From positions 124,001 through 188,000 of the IMG/VR virus record IMGVR_UViG_3300032931_001151: a DNA stretch of 64,000 nt; one strand, given 5' to 3'. The position numbers and the translations under genes were made by a program. Below the pieces are notes generated by a model, which was not told the DNA's origin, did no database searches, and was given only the letters and a program-made list of their open reading frames with translations. Positions 34,320-43,726 of this stretch are shown here, one piece after another; position 1 is the stretch's first letter, and each line of letters begins with the position of its first letter.

Positions 34320-34676
34320 TTATTTTATATTGCTCAACAAAGTATTTATAAGTTCACGGTCTTTTCTTTTTAAAAATGGGGTCTTTACTAGTTCCCCGCC
34401 AACAACTATAAACTTTTGTCTTGTTAGTAATATATCATTATTTTCCCCTAGACCATAGAAATTCAAAAATTTACTAATTAATATAGCATTGTACACGTCA
34501 TCTTTTGAATTCTTTATAGAATAAATTAATATATCTATAAGCGGAGTTAAATCTTTATCAATATTTTTGAATAATTCCAATAACTCGGTTATCTTACTTT
34601 TAGTTAGAGAATACTCCTTTGCTTCTATATCATCTAACTTTAATTTCAGTTTCTCTTTTATTGAAGATTCTTCCAT
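34320..34676 (-). CDS. Hypothetical protein
   Basis: 118-aa ORF with SD GAGGA and TGGTATAAT upstream. Confidence 0.55.
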   Translation of the reverse strand: MEESSIKEKLKLKLDDIEAKEYSLTKSKITELLELFKNIDKDLTPLIDILIYSIKNSKDDVYNAILISKFLNFYGLGENNDILLTRQKFIVVGGELVKTPFLKRKDRELINTLLSNIK

Positions 34677-34693
34677 AATATTTCCTCATAATT

Positions 34694-34721
34694 TGGTATA
34701 ATAGGTAAGTTAATTATACCA
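34694..34721. promoter_or_regulatory. Overlapping divergent extended -10 promoters
   Basis: Inverted repeat TGGTATAAT...ATTATACCA between divergent genes (34676 minus, 34741 plus). Confidence 0.6.
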
Positions 34722-34740
34722 TATACAAGGAATATATTTT

Positions 34741-35211
34741 ATGGCCGAAAATGATAAGACAAATGAAGAAAAAAAGGCAATATTGGACGAACTTGATAAT
34801 AGATACAATGAAAAATATCAAGAAATAAAAAAAGAAATTGACGAAATGTTTAAAATCAATCAATTTGAATTGGCCGAAGAAAGTGTAAAACATGTATCAA
34901 AAATGCACTTCTATAATAGTAGACTTTCAGAAGAGAAAATGATGTTATTTAAGATTAAAAGAAAGATGGATGAAATTCATGGAGAATTATTTGAGAAATA
35001 TAGATTTAATAATAGTTTTAAAATAACTACTAAGGGTGAAGTAGAGGAATGGATAAATAGAGACATAAAATGGCAGAATATTAATACAAGATATGAAAAT
35101 CAAAAAATAATGGTAGATCATTATCAACGAGTAGTTGAAGCTATTAAGGATAAAGGGTATATGATTAAAAACTTAATTGACTTAAAAAAGATTGAACTAG
35201 GTCTTCGATGA
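34741..35211 (+). CDS. uvsY: Recombination mediator UvsY
   Basis: Helical ~150-aa protein upstream of uvsW; C-terminal 'IKDKGYMIKNLIDLKK' matches the UvsY pattern. Confidence 0.75.
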   Translation: MAENDKTNEEKKAILDELDNRYNEKYQEIKKEIDEMFKINQFELAEESVKHVSKMHFYNSRLSEEKMMLFKIKRKMDEIHGELFEKYRFNNSFKITTKGEVEEWINRDIKWQNINTRYENQKIMVDHYQRVVEAIKDKGYMIKNLIDLKKIELGLR

Positions 35212-36728
35212 GTCTAATTAGCAAAGATATATACATCGTAAAACTCAATAACGTTTGGGGTCAAATTTCATGTGAAGACTATGAAGTTATTGAAGGTGCA
35301 TATCAACAATTTGGTTTATTTGCAGATGGATATTTCTTTGATAAAAGATATAAGGCTGGTATATGGGATGGAAAGGTTCGAGGAGTTAGAAGAGATGGAA
35401 CGTTCTATCTTGGATTATATAAAGAAGTTAAAGACTATCTTGAAAAACAATCAGAATATTCATTACAAATAGATCCAAAGTTTATTTCTACCATTGAAGA
35501 TAAAGAAGAGTTAAAAGATGACTTAGTGATAGTTACTAATAAGATGTTAGATTCTGTTAAATGTGATCTCTCTCCTAGATATTATCAATGGCGGGCCGCA
35601 CTTAAGGCATATTATTATAAAAGAATGATAGTAGAGCATTGTACTAGTGCGGGTAAGTCATTAACTATTGCTATTATAATAAATTACATATTACATAAAA
35701 ATCCAAATTTTAAAATATTAATATTAGTCCCAAGGCTTGATCTTGTTGAACAAATGACCGAAGATTATACTAAATATGGAATTGATCCTAGTAAAATGGG
35801 AAAATTTACCGGAGAATTTAAAGATTTTAATGAACAAATAATAGTTAGTACTTGGCAAAGCATGAACTCTCAAAAATTTCTTTTGGGTAAATTTAATGCT
35901 ATTATAGCTGACGAATGTCACTCTTTAAAAGCTTCCGTAGTTAGATCGGTTGCGGAAGATGCTATTAATGCTGAGTATCGGATAGGAATGACTGGTACTA
36001 TGCCTGATCCGCCGGCAGAGCAAATGCTAATTAAAGGAGTTTTAGGTTTCGTCGGTGATATAGTTAAAGTAGCCGAATTGGCCGAACAAAAAATGATTGC
36101 GATACCGAAAATACATATACCTTATTTGAAATACTCTAAAGAAGATGTTAAGTCTATAGTGTCAGCACAAAAGAATCTTGAAGGAAGAGACGCTTATAGG
36201 TTTGAACAAGAGTTTTTATTTAATCACGATAAAAGAAATGAATTAATTTATAAAATAACTAAAAAGTTCATTCAACGAAAGCAAAATATTCTTATATTAG
36301 TTTCTAAACATGACCATTGTGAAAAAATTAAAGAAAAGTTAATGAGTAGGGGTATTATACCACTAGTAGTCACGGGCGAATTAAAAGATATGGGTGAAAG
36401 AAATAGAATTAGAAAATCATTAGAAGATGAAGGCGGGCAAGTCATATTAGCAACGGTTGGCGTTTATTCAACCGGTATTTCAATTAAGAGACTACATGCT
36501 ATAATATTTGCGGCGGCAGGTAAAAGTAAAATCCAAACATTACAATCTGTTGGTAGAGGTCTTAGACTAGATAAGAGGAATGACAAAACTCAATTATACC
36601 TTTACGACTTTGCCGATGATTTGAAATATTCTAATGACGGGTTAACAACCCGAATGGAATATTATGCTAGAAATGAGTTTAATGTTAAAATTAAGGAAAT
36701 AGATCTTTATGCCGAAATTCCAGAATAA
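35208..36728 (+). CDS. uvsW: SF2 helicase UvsW
   Basis: 'WDGK', 'TSAGKS', 'STWQS', 'DECH', 'GMTGT', 'LQSVGRGLR'. Confidence 0.93.
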   Translation: MSLISKDIYIVKLNNVWGQISCEDYEVIEGAYQQFGLFADGYFFDKRYKAGIWDGKVRGVRRDGTFYLGLYKEVKDYLEKQSEYSLQIDPKFISTIEDKEELKDDLVIVTNKMLDSVKCDLSPRYYQWRAALKAYYYKRMIVEHCTSAGKSLTIAIIINYILHKNPNFKILILVPRLDLVEQMTEDYTKYGIDPSKMGKFTGEFKDFNEQIIVSTWQSMNSQKFLLGKFNAIIADECHSLKASVVRSVAEDAINAEYRIGMTGTMPDPPAEQMLIKGVLGFVGDIVKVAELAEQKMIAIPKIHIPYLKYSKEDVKSIVSAQKNLEGRDAYRFEQEFLFNHDKRNELIYKITKKFIQRKQNILILVSKHDHCEKIKEKLMSRGIIPLVVTGELKDMGERNRIRKSLEDEGGQVILATVGVYSTGISIKRLHAIIFAAAGKSKIQTLQSVGRGLRLDKRNDKTQLYLYDFADDLKYSNDGLTTRMEYYARNEFNVKIKEIDLYAEIPE

Positions 36729-38553
36729 TAGTAAAAAAAGGATAGATATTATATATCAAGGAAGAAAGATAGTAATTCCAATTGGCGGATTTATTGAAGG
36801 ACCGCCACATTTAAAATTATATAAGGGACTTGAATTATGTATAGATGCTACTAATAAGGTAGCACTCAACTCCTCCAAAAAAATAGAGTCAACTTTAGAT
36901 ATAAACCAAGAGAATATAAACAACATAAATAAAACAATTCAATATATTAGCGATTATACGACTCTACCATCTATATCTATTTGTATATTAACAAAGAATA
37001 AATTACATTTTATCTCCGATTGCATAAATTCTATTCTTGATAAAGTTAAATATCCTAATACAAAAATATTGTTATTTGATACTGGAACAACCGAGCAAGA
37101 AGTTTTAAATTATTATAAAACACTTTCTAATACAAGAATACCTATTATTATTCATAATATAGGAAAATATCATTTTTCAACAAATTACAACGATGGAATA
37201 TTTAAATGCGTTGATACTGATTATTGTCTAATTCAAAATAATGATACTATTGCGTTGAATGATTACGTTAGTAAATTAATGAAAATTTCTATTATTGAAA
37301 AAGTGGGTGCTTGTGGACCTAGAATGTTATATAAAAATGGCACTATACAACACGACGGTCAATATATGTTTAACCATCAAGTAGGATCCGGATTTGTTAA
37401 TCCAGGCCATTTAGGAATGGGAAAATTACCATCTGAAGTTGGAGGAGGTAGACATCTAGTTGATGGCATAACTGCGGCAGGTCAACTTGTTAGAACTAAA
37501 TTATTTAAGAAATTAGGAGGATTTAATACTAATTTTAAAGACATCTATCAAGATGTCCATTTTAATATGACATTAAGAGGGAATGGATATATTTCTATTT
37601 GTGATAGAGATGCGGTAATTAATCACTATGACAATTCTTCTCGTAAAGATTCGTTTCATATACAGGAAGAAGTTGCAAAGATGTGGAAAGATAGTAACTA
37701 TCTATTCCATGAATTAATCCCTCGTGATGGCACATTACGGAATTTTAAAAGAAAAACGCCAATATTTAGCATTATTACATTAGTAAACGATAAAAAACAA
37801 TATATTGATTTTCTAGAAGATCTAAAAAATCAAAAATTTAATGGAATATTTGAAGTAATAGCCTTGCCAAATTTTAATGACGAATATAAAAGTGCAGCGG
37901 AAGCACTTAATGTTGGTAAAGATATAGCAGAAGGTGACTATGTAATGTATTGTCATCAAGATTTAAAAGTTCCATGTGATTGGCTTCTAAAAATATCAAA
38001 TAATATAAACTCATTAAATATGAAATCTATTGGGTTTCTTGGAATGGCTGGAGTTCTTTACAAAGAAGAAAATAATAAAAAGCAAGATGCTGCCATATTT
38101 CTTTCTAATTTAAATAGCAATAAACAAAAATTGTCGGATTACTATATGAAATTAGTGGGAGACAAACTTGAAGTTCAATGTTTAGACGAATTATGTATTA
38201 TAGGGTCTAGATCTGACCGCTATAGATTTGATGAGATTAATTTTGATCACTATCATTGGTATGGAGCCGACATATGCTTACAAGCATTGGTAGATAGTAG
38301 AAAGAATTATGCCATTAATGCCGAATGCTATCATTTATCCAATGGAGTATCCAATTTCAATAGAAGTGGGCATAGTGAAAAATATATAGAAGGTTCAAAA
38401 AAACTATATATTAAGTGGACACCTAAAATAAGTGAATTTAGAACAACTACCGCAACGTTCATTAAATCTACGAAAACTATTAAATTTTTAGTATATAAAG
38501 TATTACCAAATGAATTAAAAAAGAATTTTATTGAAACAATCTTAATGACTTGA
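36709..38553 (+). CDS. Two-domain GT-A (GT2) glycosyltransferase; first domain WbbL/rhamnosyltransferase-like
   Basis: Domain 1: 'ISICILTKN', 'LIQNNDT', 'VGACGPRML', 'FKKLGGF...YQDV'. Domain 2: 'FSIITLVN', 'ALNVG', 'YCHQDL', 'HWYGADICLQ'. Confidence 0.8.
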   Translation: MPKFQNNSKKRIDIIYQGRKIVIPIGGFIEGPPHLKLYKGLELCIDATNKVALNSSKKIESTLDINQENINNINKTIQYISDYTTLPSISICILTKNKLHFISDCINSILDKVKYPNTKILLFDTGTTEQEVLNYYKTLSNTRIPIIIHNIGKYHFSTNYNDGIFKCVDTDYCLIQNNDTIALNDYVSKLMKISIIEKVGACGPRMLYKNGTIQHDGQYMFNHQVGSGFVNPGHLGMGKLPSEVGGGRHLVDGITAAGQLVRTKLFKKLGGFNTNFKDIYQDVHFNMTLRGNGYISICDRDAVINHYDNSSRKDSFHIQEEVAKMWKDSNYLFHELIPRDGTLRNFKRKTPIFSIITLVNDKKQYIDFLEDLKNQKFNGIFEVIALPNFNDEYKSAAEALNVGKDIAEGDYVMYCHQDLKVPCDWLLKISNNINSLNMKSIGFLGMAGVLYKEENNKKQDAAIFLSNLNSNKQKLSDYYMKLVGDKLEVQCLDELCIIGSRSDRYRFDEINFDHYHWYGADICLQALVDSRKNYAINAECYHLSNGVSNFNRSGHSEKYIEGSKKLYIKWTPKISEFRTTTATFIKSTKTIKFLVYKVLPNELKKNFIETILMT

Positions 38554-38563
38554 AAGAATTATG

Positions 38564-38592
38564 TTGAAGAATATGTTTTTGGATTGTATAAT
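38564..38592 (+). promoter_or_regulatory. Sigma70-type promoter facing a long non-coding region
   Basis: TTGAAG-N17-TATAAT. Confidence 0.65.
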
Positions 38593-38597
38593 GAATA

Positions 38598-39110
38598 GGT
38601 CGCTCTTTAAAACTATCTTATCTAATGGAGATATAAAAGTACATTAGAGATTTTTAGACATCATTTTTATTAAAATGATTCCACGATGCTACATATAAGG
38701 TTATTATTATCCTTATATTCTGGAGAGAAGGGTTGGAGATCCTGTAGTATGGTACGCTAGTGATAGTCTACCCAACAAATTGCTTTGACGGTAATCATAT
38801 AGTTTAATTGATTACTAACACGCAAAAAAAATAAATTATACATAAAACTAATCAAAGTATAACTCCGCAACTTAGGAGTTTATTACCTCTACTTAAGCTA
38901 AAATCTTCTTTAGTGGCTACTAATTAACCAAAGTGGTGGAAGTAACTAAAAAGAAATAAAAGTTCGTGTAACTTGAAATAACTAGTAAAAAGCCTTCTTA
39001 AAAGAAAATGTAAATAAAATAACACGGAAGGATTTTAAGGAAGAATTGTTTTTAATTTTGTTTTATATAATAGATAATAAAAAACCACCATATTGTGTAT
39101 GGTGGTTTAA
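38598..39110 (+). ncRNA. Candidate structured non-coding RNA (or transcription-activated origin)
   Basis: About 510 nt without a credible ORF, downstream of a promoter, with multiple hairpins; family not recognised. Confidence 0.35.
39082..39108. terminator. Terminator hairpin (best U-tract on the minus strand; possibly bidirectional)
   Basis: AAACCACCATA/TATGGTGGTTT stem. Confidence 0.75.
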
Positions 39111-39131
39111 TTTAATAAATATGTTAATGTA

Positions 39132-40952
39132 TTATATAATTTTATCTATTGAAGTAAATTCATTCTTTTTAATTAAATGTATAATACTATCAAATATTTC
39201 TTCACCCAGTTCTTTTTTATGTGAAATAATGTAAATACATTTATCAGGACAATTAGTTTTAAATCCATTCTTTAAATGCTCTAAAAATGATTCGGCTCCT
39301 ACGGTATCCAATGATGTATCAAGTACTTCATCAAGTACTAATATATTTGTATCAATTGAATTTCTCTCTTTTGATACATCCATTAAAGCAAGAAGTAATG
39401 CTAAATCTATTCTTTTCTTTTCTCCACCAGAAAACGACTCGTATGATCTTATATCTTTATTTCTTGCTATTAATTTTTCTTTTAGTTCACTATCAAACGT
39501 AATAGTATAATCGGAACCTAACATTGATAAGTAAAAATTAACTTTTTTGTTCAAAATAGGTAATACTTTCATCGTTACATATTTTCTTACACCATCTTCT
39601 CCAAGTAAACCTCTAATAAATTTATTGTACTTAAAGTCTTTTTGGGCAATATTAAATTTTTCTTCGGCTAATTTAACTAAATTTTCTAATTTATTATATT
39701 CTTGTTGGGATATAATCTCTTTTATTTCAAGTTTTCTTTTAATTTCTCTTTCTAAGTTATCATTAGAATTTTTAATTGACATTTCTAATTCACGAATTTT
39801 ATTTTTAGCCATTCGTAATTTATCAACATTATCTTCAAGTTTTGAAATTTTTTCTGTTATTAATTTTGAATTTGTATAACATTCGTTAATAAATGTAGTA
39901 TATTCATTAATTTTTTTATTTAAGTCGTTAACTTTAAGTTTTAAATTATTAACATATTCGGTAATTAATGGATTATTGGTTGAAGTTTGGCATAGCGGAC
40001 AATGTTCCGTATGTTCAAGTTTAGCCAATACACTATTATTCATTTTTATTTCTGTTTCTAATTTTGATTTATCATTAATATAACCATTTCGTTTAATTGT
40101 AATATCATTAAGTTCTTTCTTCAATGTATGAAGTAAATCATCAAAATTGACATCTTTAATTTTTTCTTCTATCTTATTTTTATTAATTTCAAATGATTGT
40201 ATTTCATCTTTTAAATCTTGAATTCTTTTTTGTTTATCCGTTTCAAACTTCAAAGTTTCAATAAGCAATGACTCTCTTCTATCTTTAGTTAAAGAAAGAG
40301 TATTAACCGCATTCTTTAGATCATTTTCAAGTACTGTTATATCACTTTTGGCATTTAGATGTTTAGTTTTAGCCTTATCACTCATTCTTCCATAGATTGA
40401 AAGAGATAGAATGTCTTCTAACACCGATCTTTTAGATGCAGGATCCATACTTAAAAATGGTACAGAGTGGTTTACATTTAAAATAATCATATTAGTGAAG
40501 CAAGTAAAACTAATTTTTATTTTTTCTTCAAGTAACGATTGGGTGTGTTTAATACTGTCCAATTGAATTTCATTGTCATCTTCCCAAACATCTGGGTTAA
40601 TTTCCCAATCCTTTATATCCTTTTCCCAAATTTTCAATAAATTCGGTTTAATTCCTCTTTCGATTTTATAAGCTTTATCTCCAATTTTGAAAGTTCCACT
40701 TAATAAACATCCATCACCATTTGTAGTATTAATAATTTCATCTTTATTAATATTTCTTAATGTTTTACCATAAAGTAAGTATGTTAACGATTCGGCTAAT
40801 AAAGTAGTTTTACCAATACCATTTCTTATAGTAGTATTTGGGACTAAATTGCCGGTTACAGCATGTATTCCCGGAGTATATTTGAAGGTTGTTGGAATAT
40901 TTCCAAAAGATAGAAAGTTTTGGATAGTTATATCAATGAACTCTAATTTCAT
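39132..40952 (-). CDS. gp46: Recombination endonuclease subunit gp46 (Rad50/SbcC-like)
   Basis: 'QNFLSFGN', Walker A 'NGIGKT', zinc hook 'CPLC', 'FSGGEK', 'LDEVLD'. Confidence 0.95.
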   Translation of the reverse strand: MKLEFIDITIQNFLSFGNIPTTFKYTPGIHAVTGNLVPNTTIRNGIGKTTLLAESLTYLLYGKTLRNINKDEIINTTNGDGCLLSGTFKIGDKAYKIERGIKPNLLKIWEKDIKDWEINPDVWEDDNEIQLDSIKHTQSLLEEKIKISFTCFTNMIILNVNHSVPFLSMDPASKRSVLEDILSLSIYGRMSDKAKTKHLNAKSDITVLENDLKNAVNTLSLTKDRRESLLIETLKFETDKQKRIQDLKDEIQSFEINKNKIEEKIKDVNFDDLLHTLKKELNDITIKRNGYINDKSKLETEIKMNNSVLAKLEHTEHCPLCQTSTNNPLITEYVNNLKLKVNDLNKKINEYTTFINECYTNSKLITEKISKLEDNVDKLRMAKNKIRELEMSIKNSNDNLEREIKRKLEIKEIISQQEYNKLENLVKLAEEKFNIAQKDFKYNKFIRGLLGEDGVRKYVTMKVLPILNKKVNFYLSMLGSDYTITFDSELKEKLIARNKDIRSYESFSGGEKKRIDLALLLALMDVSKERNSIDTNILVLDEVLDTSLDTVGAESFLEHLKNGFKTNCPDKCIYIISHKKELGEEIFDSIIHLIKKNEFTSIDKII

Positions 40953-42682: not shown

Positions 42683-43726
42683 ATGACTACTCAAAATCAA
42701 CCTGATAAAAATATTGTTAACTTTCCATCAGACAAGAATGGGTGTGGATATTATAGAACATTTATACCCTATGGCTATTTAGCTTGTAAATATAATTATA
42801 ATGTTACGAACCTAATGGAATTCGTATTTGATTTAAATTTTATAGCAAGATCGCAATCTATAAGATTTCAACGTCAAGTAACAGAAGCACAAAAGAAAGT
42901 AGTTTTTGAGTATAAAAAAGTAATTCAACGAGTTGGCGCAAAAACTAAGTTAATTTACGAGATTGACGATAATGTACATGAAATTATGCCGTCCAATATA
43001 GTAGCATATCAATTCTACACCGAGACGAAAAAGAATAATATGCTTCAGATTATGAGGAATGTTGATAAAGTAACCTTTAGTACACAATTCCTTAAAGATT
43101 ATTACAAAGAGAGATTTGGCATTGAAAATTCTATAGTTGTTCCAAATTATCTACCAAAATTCCTTTGGGGTGGAGCCGGTAAGAGAGATAAGTACAAAAA
43201 AGGATCAAAGCCAAGAATTTTATGGGCAGGTTCCGCCTCGCACGTAGGAAAAGGGGGAGATTTAGAATTCTTATTACCTTTAATTAAGAAGACGAAGGAT
43301 GAGTTTGAATGGGTATTCTTTGGTGTAATTCCCCCAGAATTAACTGGTCAATTTGAATTCCACAATTGGTCGGATTTTTATTCTTATCCCGCCGCACTAG
43401 ACGCTATTAATGCGGATATAGCTTTAGCTCCAATTTGTGATAATGCTTTCAATTATGGAAAATCCGATTTGAAATTGCTTGAATATGCGGCATTAGGTCT
43501 TCCCGGAGTATACTCATCAATAGGTGATGGTCTAGGCCCATACGATCTAGTTGAAGGTATTCCATGTGTTAAAAATAATATGGATGAGTGGTATCAAGCT
43601 ATTAAAGGGCTAACTAGCGATCAAGCAAAATGGGATGCGGCACTTCAAGCATCACAAAGAGAATTATCAAAGCGTTGGTTAGAGGATGAGAGTAATATAA
43701 AAGTTTACCACGATGTACATTCTTGA
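42683..43726 (+). CDS. GT-B fold (GT4-like) glycosyltransferase
   Basis: 'GCGYYR', 'YEIDD', 'VVPNYLP', 'ILWAGSASH', 'DIALAP...FNYGKSDLKLLEYAALGLP'. Confidence 0.8.
   Translation: MTTQNQPDKNIVNFPSDKNGCGYYRTFIPYGYLACKYNYNVTNLMEFVFDLNFIARSQSIRFQRQVTEAQKKVVFEYKKVIQRVGAKTKLIYEIDDNVHEIMPSNIVAYQFYTETKKNNMLQIMRNVDKVTFSTQFLKDYYKERFGIENSIVVPNYLPKFLWGGAGKRDKYKKGSKPRILWAGSASHVGKGGDLEFLLPLIKKTKDEFEWVFFGVIPPELTGQFEFHNWSDFYSYPAALDAINADIALAPICDNAFNYGKSDLKLLEYAALGLPGVYSSIGDGLGPYDLVEGIPCVKNNMDEWYQAIKGLTSDQAKWDAALQASQRELSKRWLEDESNIKVYHDVHS

Follow-up and report, generated by a model that had tools for sequence, protein, structure and literature searches.

Positions 38554-39131 of the 64,000-nucleotide (nt) stretch of DNA analysed here – hereafter the window, corresponding to positions 124001-188000 of the IMG/VR virus record IMGVR_UViG_3300032931_001151 (214.2 kb in total, 33% GC) – lie between the convergent genes for a glycosyltransferase (GT) and the SbcC/Rad50-like protein gp46, and very probably constitute a genuine, novel gene for a structured non-coding RNA. 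We regard the RNA gene as genuine because its fold is kept by compensatory substitutions in 10 phages, and as a transcription unit of its own because its promoter and terminator are conserved. Overall, the locus is probably best explained as a stand-alone, uncatalogued structured RNA gene, whose product may act in trans. An initial annotation of the window, made from sequence alone, had proposed either an undescribed phage non-coding RNA of ~500 nt or a T4-style R-loop replication origin. The first proposal agrees with what we found: a predicted transcript of ~515 nt from promoter to terminator, whose ~270-nt 5′ part carries a covariation-supported fold that has no match in Rfam. The second found no positive support. 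What the initial annotation missed is that only the 5′ half is structured, that this half opens with an H-type pseudoknot, and that the RNA is linked to GT across a wide phage clade.

The gap is bounded by the GT stop codon at 38553 (plus strand) and the end of gp46 at 39132 (minus strand). Consistent with its earlier description as a gene-free island, a crude open reading frame (ORF)-coverage scan of the whole 214.2-kb record identified it as the sole stretch of at least 300 bp in the window that is free of ORFs of at least 90 amino acids (aa). Relatives were found by a word-index protein search with gp46 over metagenome assemblies, which yielded a graded series. Their contigs share the gene order of the window – uvsY-uvsW-GT-RNA-gp46-gp47, a recombination/replication module – and every one has a gene-free gap of 530-740 bp past GT (390-740 nt over all clade loci). 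The close set comprises six full-length relatives and one partial relative, with gp46 65-80% identical. Among these close relatives the promoter, a ~270-nt core and the terminator align and the ~200 nt between core and terminator do not; compared pairwise at the nucleotide level, the core is 77% identical, GT and gp46 are 71% identical, and that intervening tail is 56% identical.

We next turn to how far the core extends beyond the close set. R1, a covariance model of the 149 best-conserved positions, scores the window at 171 bits, having been trained on the window and six relatives, and finds a single copy in the window's genome. Among 80 IMG/VR loci retrieved with a 25-protein gp46 alignment, R1 matches three: L037 (145 bits), L034 (123 bits) and L038 (45 bits). 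These three are independent of the training of R1, and their gp46 is only ~40% identical to that of the window. Together with the close set they form what we call family 1, every proposed helix of which is paired in the window sequence. Core identity between the window and L037 is 74%, equal to the range inside the window clade (71-85%), yet their GTs are 40% identical and their gp46 proteins ~40%; the L038 core is 52% identical. Since the core stays at 74% where GT falls to 40%, roughly two thirds of core positions appear to be fixed and the remainder saturated. Judged by these identities, the core is under stronger constraint than the neighbouring GT and replication genes, indicative of strong purifying selection.

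The fold is supported by covariation in several alignments. From seven sequences RNAalifold predicts 59 pairs, and compensatory double changes are seen in 22. When the structure is written out to include the pseudoknot, 96.4% of pair cells are paired, and sliding the 3′ partners by 1-3 columns lowers this to 38-49%; double changes are found in 26 of 65 pairs (2-6 when slid), and 0 of 500 column shuffles match. With all 10 members aligned, pairing reaches 98.5% of cells, and 24 of 41 pairs have compensatory changes. The pseudoknot was also assessed in nine members whose 5′ ends were aligned by MAFFT without fitting to the model; here 95.7% of cells are paired (45-50% when slid), 9 of 13 pairs are compensatory, both stems are confirmed and again 0 of 500 shuffles match. 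Across tests, 96-98% of pair cells are paired, against 27-50% with partners slid. The initial annotation had suggested collecting homologues and looking for covariation, and the outcome – 10 members, 24-26 pairs with compensatory double changes, no matching shuffle among 500 – favours a conserved RNA.

Folding energy alone is weak evidence. The folding z-scores of the plus and minus strands are -1.85 and -1.83 over the whole gap, and -2.85 and -1.62 over the core (38610-38882). The comparison with shuffled sequence proposed earlier is therefore marginal for the gap, where the two strands are similar, but better for the plus strand of the core. The case for an RNA rests on covariation and not on energy. 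The minimum-free-energy (MFE) fold of the window sequence alone is the consensus fold, including its P4/P5/P6 domain. Conserved G-U pairs in P4, P7 and P8 would become C-A mismatches on the opposite strand and therefore place the RNA on the plus strand. As had been claimed, the gap lacks a credible ORF: no frame in it is conserved among relatives. The only recurrent frame, of 33 aa (VLHI...), occurs in three relatives; in the window a 1-nt indel within the P5 loop disrupts it, the start codon is absent in L013, and the frame ends after 11 codons in L004. Reading TAG through as glutamine, prompted by a CUA-anticodon tRNA described below, gave no long ORF in the gap.

The features of the locus are listed here in window coordinates.
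36709-38553, plus strand: two-domain family-2 glycosyltransferase (GT), 614 aa (Pfam Glycos_transf_2 and Glyco_tranf_2_5).
38564-38592, plus strand: predicted sigma-70-type promoter, -35 TTGAAG, 17-nt spacer, -10 TATAAT (consensus scan and conservation).
38614-38648, plus strand: H-type pseudoknot at the 5′ end of the RNA (unfitted MAFFT alignment, compensatory changes).
38661-38678, plus strand: P3, an A-U-rich hairpin, ATCATTTT/AAAATGAT, 38661-38666 with 38673-38678 (paired in 100% of cells).
38686-38750, plus strand: three-way junction domain P4/P5/P6 (10-member alignment and single-sequence MFE fold).
38751-38772, plus strand: P7, a GNRA-capped hairpin (100% of cells paired, 5 of 8 pairs compensatory).
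38780-38825, plus strand: P8, a long hairpin, GTAATCA/TGATTAC (6 of 14 pairs compensatory, 97% of cells paired).
38862-38879, plus strand: P9, a tentative hairpin, CUCC-GCAACUUA-GGAG (conserved, without covariation).
38883-39081, plus strand: A-rich tail of poorly conserved sequence and variable length, without consensus structure.
39082-39108, both strands: terminator hairpin common to the RNA (plus) and gp46 (minus) (terminator scan and covariation).
39132-40952, minus strand: gp46 (SbcC/Rad50-like), convergent to GT and the anchor of the search for relatives.

The core occupies ~270 nt on the plus strand (38614-38879), with nine helices kept in the 10 members. In the pseudoknot at its 5′ end, stem A pairs 38614-38619 with 38628-38633, stem B pairs 38621-38627 with 38642-38648 (TCTAATG/CATTAGA), and the A-rich loop 3, UAAAAGUA, spans 38634-38641. 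P3 is mostly invariant, with one compensatory pair (C-G to A-U in two of seven sequences). Within the three-way junction, P4 joins 38686-38693 to 38743-38750, P5 (ATATAAGG/CCTTATAT) joins 38694-38700 to 38711-38717, and P6 joins 38718-38721 to 38726-38729 around a GGAG loop (38722-38725); across the 10 members, compensatory pairs number 6 of 8, 3 of 7 and 4 of 4, respectively. The single-stranded segment J6/4 holds a nearly invariant UGGAG. The tetraloop of P7 (38760-38763) reads GUGA in the window and GUAA in the nine other members, and P8 has two conserved internal loops in the layout UUGC-UU-UG-AC-GGUAAUCA ... UGAUUACU-AA-CA-C-GCAA.

P9 presents an invariant 8-nt loop, GCAACUUA, which may be a contact site, and a 13-nt segment, CUCCGCAACUUAG, is invariant in the seven members of the window clade. 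We consider its helix tentative because it shows no covariation and because GGAG is replaced by GAAG in L004, L016 and L037, creating a C-A mismatch in 3 of 10 members. In L004 and L016 the P6 loop and P9 both change from GGAG to GAAG; this coupling was dropped as a candidate interaction since L037 breaks it. The invariant unpaired motifs are UUCCACG, UGGAG, CCAAC, ACGCARAAA and the GCAACUUA loop. Several of the stems named in the initial annotation correspond to parts of this fold: stem B, P3, P5 and P8 hold up across relatives. The stem AACTCC/GGAGTT, our P9, is conserved but never covaries, and GTTGG/CCAAC, TTCGTGT/ACACGGA and TTCTTAAAA/TTTTAAGGA – the latter two in the tail – are not conserved.

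The promoter reported earlier at 38564-38592 is present as described. Promoter-like matches are not enriched in the region (8, against 8.7 in shuffles), and our support for this one comes from its conserved position in relatives and not from the scan count: six relatives keep the position, with an invariant TATAAT at -10 and TTGNNN at -35. In lineages further away, the equivalent position past the GT stop holds an extended -10 (TGnTATAAT or TATACT), and in most lineages a -10 element, often extended as TGnTAtAaT, directly precedes the pseudoknot. Transcription would start near 38599. At the other end, the predicted terminator hairpin is also confirmed, with 10 pairs of which 4 are compensatory across seven sequences. 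The terminator scanner assigns this hairpin to gp46, on the minus strand. Read on the plus strand, it precedes UUUAAUUU, and the terminator is therefore plausibly bidirectional. The tail that leads up to it measures ~200 nt in the window and ~140-210 nt in relatives, and RNAalifold gives no helix in it ahead of the terminator.

These features suggest how the RNA might work. The sigma-70-type promoter and the place of the gene in an early replication/recombination module lead us to propose that host RNA polymerase would transcribe the RNA early in infection. The compact tertiary fold would then display the invariant single-stranded motifs, and the RNA would serve in trans as decoy, scaffold or cofactor, bound to a conserved partner that could be a host machine or a phage protein; it would work neither through the DNA of its own gene nor as an mRNA leader. 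The tail would be a mere spacer up to the terminator common with gp46. This binding mechanism is put forward tentatively, and we consider it slightly less likely than not. As the phage uses AAGGA-type Shine-Dalgarno (SD) sequences, it is a matter of speculation that several of the GGAG motifs might touch the translation apparatus.

The RNA matches no class that we could compare it with, as the initial annotation had anticipated. Rfam 15 at gathering thresholds, which covers ROOL, GOLLD, OLE, raiA, HEARO, RNase P, tmRNA, 6S, SRP, group I/II introns and riboswitches, gave no match in the whole window or in 10 related loci. At E-values up to 10 only chance-level matches appeared, the best being pntA on the wrong strand (24.9 bits against a threshold of 54), and a permissive scan of the gaps of L009, L014 and L017 found nothing. 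ARAGORN reported no tRNA or tmRNA gene in the window, and neither the gap nor the L017 and L037 RNAs had a blastn match among 50,697 phage records. With a GGA motif in one hairpin loop only (P6, GGAG or GAAG) and the remaining GGAG sites helical or in a junction, the RNA does not qualify as a CsrB/RsmZ-type sponge. Three further resemblances were pursued and abandoned: a T-box-like UGGUAC is not conserved, a 10-nt identity to a 16S rRNA word is within chance and lost in L037, and RNase P-like conserved regions are absent.

To our knowledge, few large tertiary-structured phage RNAs are known, namely tRNAs, tmRNA, introns, phi29 pRNA, GOLLD and ROOL, and every one of them has raised new questions. 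ROOL and GOLLD (RF03087 and RF01998) are similar in kind only, as phage-associated, stand-alone, multi-helix RNAs with pseudoknots and GNRA-type motifs; like the RNA described here, they were found by covariation. However, no sequence or structure match to either was seen at E-values up to 10, the core here is ~270 nt compared with ~580 and 800 nt, and the gene is tied to GT instead of lying beside a tRNA cluster. The record does have such a cluster (18 tRNAs by ARAGORN, record 208273-214085), outside the window and ~45 kb from the RNA. It includes a CUA-anticodon tRNA at record 210415-210487 that ARAGORN labels tRNA-Pyl, a candidate amber suppressor; the window ORFs appear intact with code 11. 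A catalogue of structured-RNA candidates from IMG/VR resembles our analysis in drawing on viral metagenome contigs, intergenic conservation and covariation, and with motifs of 29-151 nt (mean 67 nt) it may hold pieces of this RNA, at most single hairpins (PMC10690425).

An alternative to a stand-alone gene is that the RNA is a cis-acting 3′ untranslated region (UTR) of the GT mRNA, co-transcribed with it, stabilising it against 3′ exonucleases or regulating GT, and perhaps processed off. The RNA lies immediately 3′ of GT in the same direction, and no terminator was found between the two in the window by the terminator scan. In L034, L037 and L038 the pseudoknot begins only 8-10 nt past the stop of a 363-aa GT (Glyco_tranf_2_5), with a weak -10-like element only. 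Nonetheless, most lineages, the window among them, keep a -10 element ahead of the pseudoknot (often with its TGn extension), conservation is stronger in the core than in GT, and a 270-nt multi-domain fold with invariant unpaired motifs far exceeds what mRNA stabilisation needs; we therefore consider the 3′ UTR reading unlikely. Type I 3′-UTR small RNAs such as DapZ and MicL offer a partial parallel – same strand behind a protein gene, own promoter near the stop, terminator at the end – but the RNA here is several times longer and has a complex tertiary-type fold in place of a seed and an Hfq-binding terminator, and no target complementarity was found.

The slot behind GT is itself informative. 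An RNA gene lies directly 3′ of GT in all lineages examined except one, and this constant position is the best lead to function. In L017, L024, L025, L027, L029, L032 and L099 the slot is occupied by a different RNA, which we term family 2, and L009 and L011 have a version of it that has diverged further. The following family 2 RNAs, each with a pseudoknot and a GNRA hairpin, were delimited.
L017:7640-7925, minus strand.
L025:6000-6262, minus strand.
L027:6670-6925, minus strand.
L029:6560-6805, minus strand.
L024:6010-6232, minus strand.
L032:6960-7195, minus strand.

The 5′ end of family 2 is an H-type pseudoknot in which stem A covaries, the loop holds CUAAGUUAGUCC, and GUCC pairs with a downstream GGAC over an A-rich linker. 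Past the pseudoknot come a long hairpin and a GNRA-capped (CGAAAG) hairpin with many compensatory pairs. Family 2 has no Rfam match. A UAGUC word in the pseudoknot loop is common to family 2 and the family 1 members L034, L037 and L038. The slots of L014 and L023 contain yet other sequences. In each of five records that are more distant again, GT measures ~600-636 aa; it is followed by a non-coding, hairpin-rich stretch in four of them, three of which have a promoter-like site (by eye) ahead of that stretch, and by an immediately adjacent ORF in the fifth.

On the gp46 tree, family 1 forms two separate, well-supported clades that are interleaved with family 2 lineages. This interleaving fits either repeated exchange of RNA cassettes or very uneven divergence; fast divergence does occur, given that the L038 core is only 52% identical. 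One reading of the pattern is that families 1 and 2 are versions of an ancient RNA partner of the adjacent GT – a cofactor, a scaffold, a guide or even a substrate – or else a new phage RNA machine conserved with the replication core of the clade. Either version would explain the linkage to GT, a core identity of 74% where GT and gp46 are at ~40%, and families that alternate like cassettes on the gp46 tree, and we regard this as decidedly unlikely. A second glycosyltransferase-like gene may lie nearby: a 347-aa ORF at window 42683-43726 (plus strand), 3.5 kb from the RNA, has a weak, sub-threshold match to Glyco_trans_1_4.

R1 with filters off, together with a second covariance model (R2), found no family 1 core in L009, L011, L014 or L017, and among 85 gp46-anchored loci searched with R1 and R2 only L034, L037 and L038 match. 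Searching IMG/VR, JGI metagenome contigs and GTDB genomes for exact patterns added no members to the contigs already collected. A pattern-scan hit in L021 proved to be a high-GC chance match that the covariance model rejected, and G003 gave a weak covariance-model match (20.9 bits, E = 0.006). The contig of relative P0011 stops 75 nt beyond gp46 and thus contributes no gap sequence.

We also weighed a model along the lines of T4 oriF/oriG or ColE1 RNA II: the transcript would be the primer of a replication origin, an R-loop in the AT-rich tail would prime the leading strand, and the 5′ fold would control the hybrid. In T4, oriF lies within uvsY, and UvsW removes origin R-loops. The locus shares with these systems a promoter-driven transcript over AT-rich DNA near uvsY and uvsW: here, too, a promoter is followed by very low-GC DNA, the tail is A-rich on the RNA strand, the 200-bp segment with the second-lowest GC content of the genome (0.17) overlaps the 3′ ends of the tail and of gp46, and the surrounding genes form the uvsY-to-gp47 module. 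One relative, L014 (gp46 60% identical), has repeats 80 nt apart in its tail (TCTTAATATTTTAT); its slot at L014:2874-3051 lacks the family 1 core and contains a GC-richer hairpin region ahead of the repeats.

Several observations argue against an origin. Selection acts on the RNA fold and not on AT-rich DNA, and L034 and L037 have no tail, with an ORF starting ~75 nt after a core that is still ~74% identical – the tail is dispensable in distant members. No iterons were found in the window or its five closest relatives, where repeats amount to chance two-copy matches. The promoter is of the sigma-70 early type. Genes converge at this locus, an unusual arrangement for an origin, and the cumulative skew minimum lies 3.9 kb off, at window ~34,690, where the direction of transcription switches. 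R-loop priming, moreover, needs no GNRA loop, pseudoknot or invariant unpaired motifs. We thus consider an origin quite improbable. As a separate observation, over the 214-kb record, cumulative GC and AT skew both reach their global minimum at window ~34,676-34,741 (record 158,687-158,697), a 65-bp divergent junction between a long minus-strand gene block and uvsY.

A fourth possibility is that the RNA is a leader or riboswitch of a downstream same-strand gene, sensing a ligand or protein. Such an ORF, of 210-762 aa, does follow the RNA in L017, L027, L029, L032, L034, L037 and L038, and P9 pairs an SD-like AGGAG with CUCC in a phage whose SD sequences are of the AAGGA type. No conserved start codon is found past P9, however, and where an ORF follows, a TATAAATA late-promoter word intervenes. 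In the window clade, L009, L011, L024 and L025 there is no same-strand ORF after the RNA; a terminator and gp46, in convergent orientation, come next. The leader reading is thus excluded in the window clade and is highly improbable for the family. The gene 32 mRNA of T4 carries a 5′ pseudoknot that serves as an autoregulatory operator. The two RNAs are alike in having an H-type pseudoknot at the 5′ end and, in the window clade, an A/U-rich unstructured stretch downstream; they differ in that a 230-nt structured domain follows the pseudoknot here and neither gene 32 nor any other ORF lies downstream.

Finally, missed small protein genes or chance hairpins in an AT-rich spacer are almost certainly not the explanation: ORFs of 24-37 aa exist, the whole-gap z-score is only -1.85 and alike on both strands, and promoter-like matches are no commoner than in shuffles, but no frame is conserved (the 33-aa frame is broken in the window, L013 and L004), and chance hairpins are ruled out by compensatory changes in nine helices, by 96-98% pairing compared with 27-50% in slid alignments, and by 0 of 500 shuffles matching.

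Several points weigh against a stand-alone RNA gene acting in trans. The promoter, the RNA ends and the timing of expression are all predictions. Family 1 comprises only 10 members, all metagenomic; the 10-member alignment (A9) was fitted to the model, which favours structure, and the covariation shuffles ignore phylogeny. A search of the phage genes for candidate partners found no Hfq, CsrA, Ro/TROVE or reverse transcriptase; complements of the conserved loops occur in the genome at chance frequency, without enrichment. In L034, L037 and L038, the 8-10-nt spacing and the weak -10-like element mean that the RNA could be a processed 3′ UTR instead of a separate transcript. R1 and R2 do not cross-detect families 1 and 2; a common pseudoknot layout and the UAGUC word no more than hint that the two are homologous.

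The loci also yielded observations beyond the RNA itself. About 75 nt past the RNA, L034, L037 and L038, in which the A-rich tail is absent, encode a same-strand ORF of 745-762 aa without a Pfam family (L037:5763-8039, L034:5772-8060 and L038:5658-7895, all minus strand). In these distant family 1 phages it sits between the RNA and gp46, overlapping the end of gp46 with its 3′ end. The T4 late-promoter consensus, TATAAATA, stands between the RNA and the next ORF in L037 (8060-8075), L034, L017, L027, L029 and L032, which suggests that gp55-type late promoters operate in this clade. GTAACT words recur ~10 nt apart (GTAGCT in L025) immediately ahead of the late-type ORF behind the RNA, at L038:7896-8060, L029:6436-6470, L032:6795-6875 and L017:7503-7530, and L116 has four ~52-nt tandem repeats with a GTAACT word downstream of GT. 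These words may be protein-binding sites.

The best cultured-phage matches of gp46 and the DNA polymerase are only ~30% identical, to cyanomyoviruses, and the phage is a deep-branching T4-like virus. Two close gp46 relatives, P0002 and P0014, lie on contigs of 385,866 bp and 406,072 bp; the longest contig of P0016 is 400,319 bp, and the L011 locus was taken from a contig of 177,305 bp. Contigs about twice the size of the window's 214-kb record could be concatemer assemblies or truly larger genomes. In L017 (11095-11788), uvsW contains Hint and intein-splicing domains and is thus an intein-containing helicase gene.

An RNA of this kind would not be reported by annotation pipelines, and the R1 and R2 covariance models make it possible to look for the family in other data. 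The linkage to GT provides a concrete, testable lead. Taken together, the pattern suggests an RNA-based function that is indispensable to a deep, wholly uncultured clade of T4-like phages.

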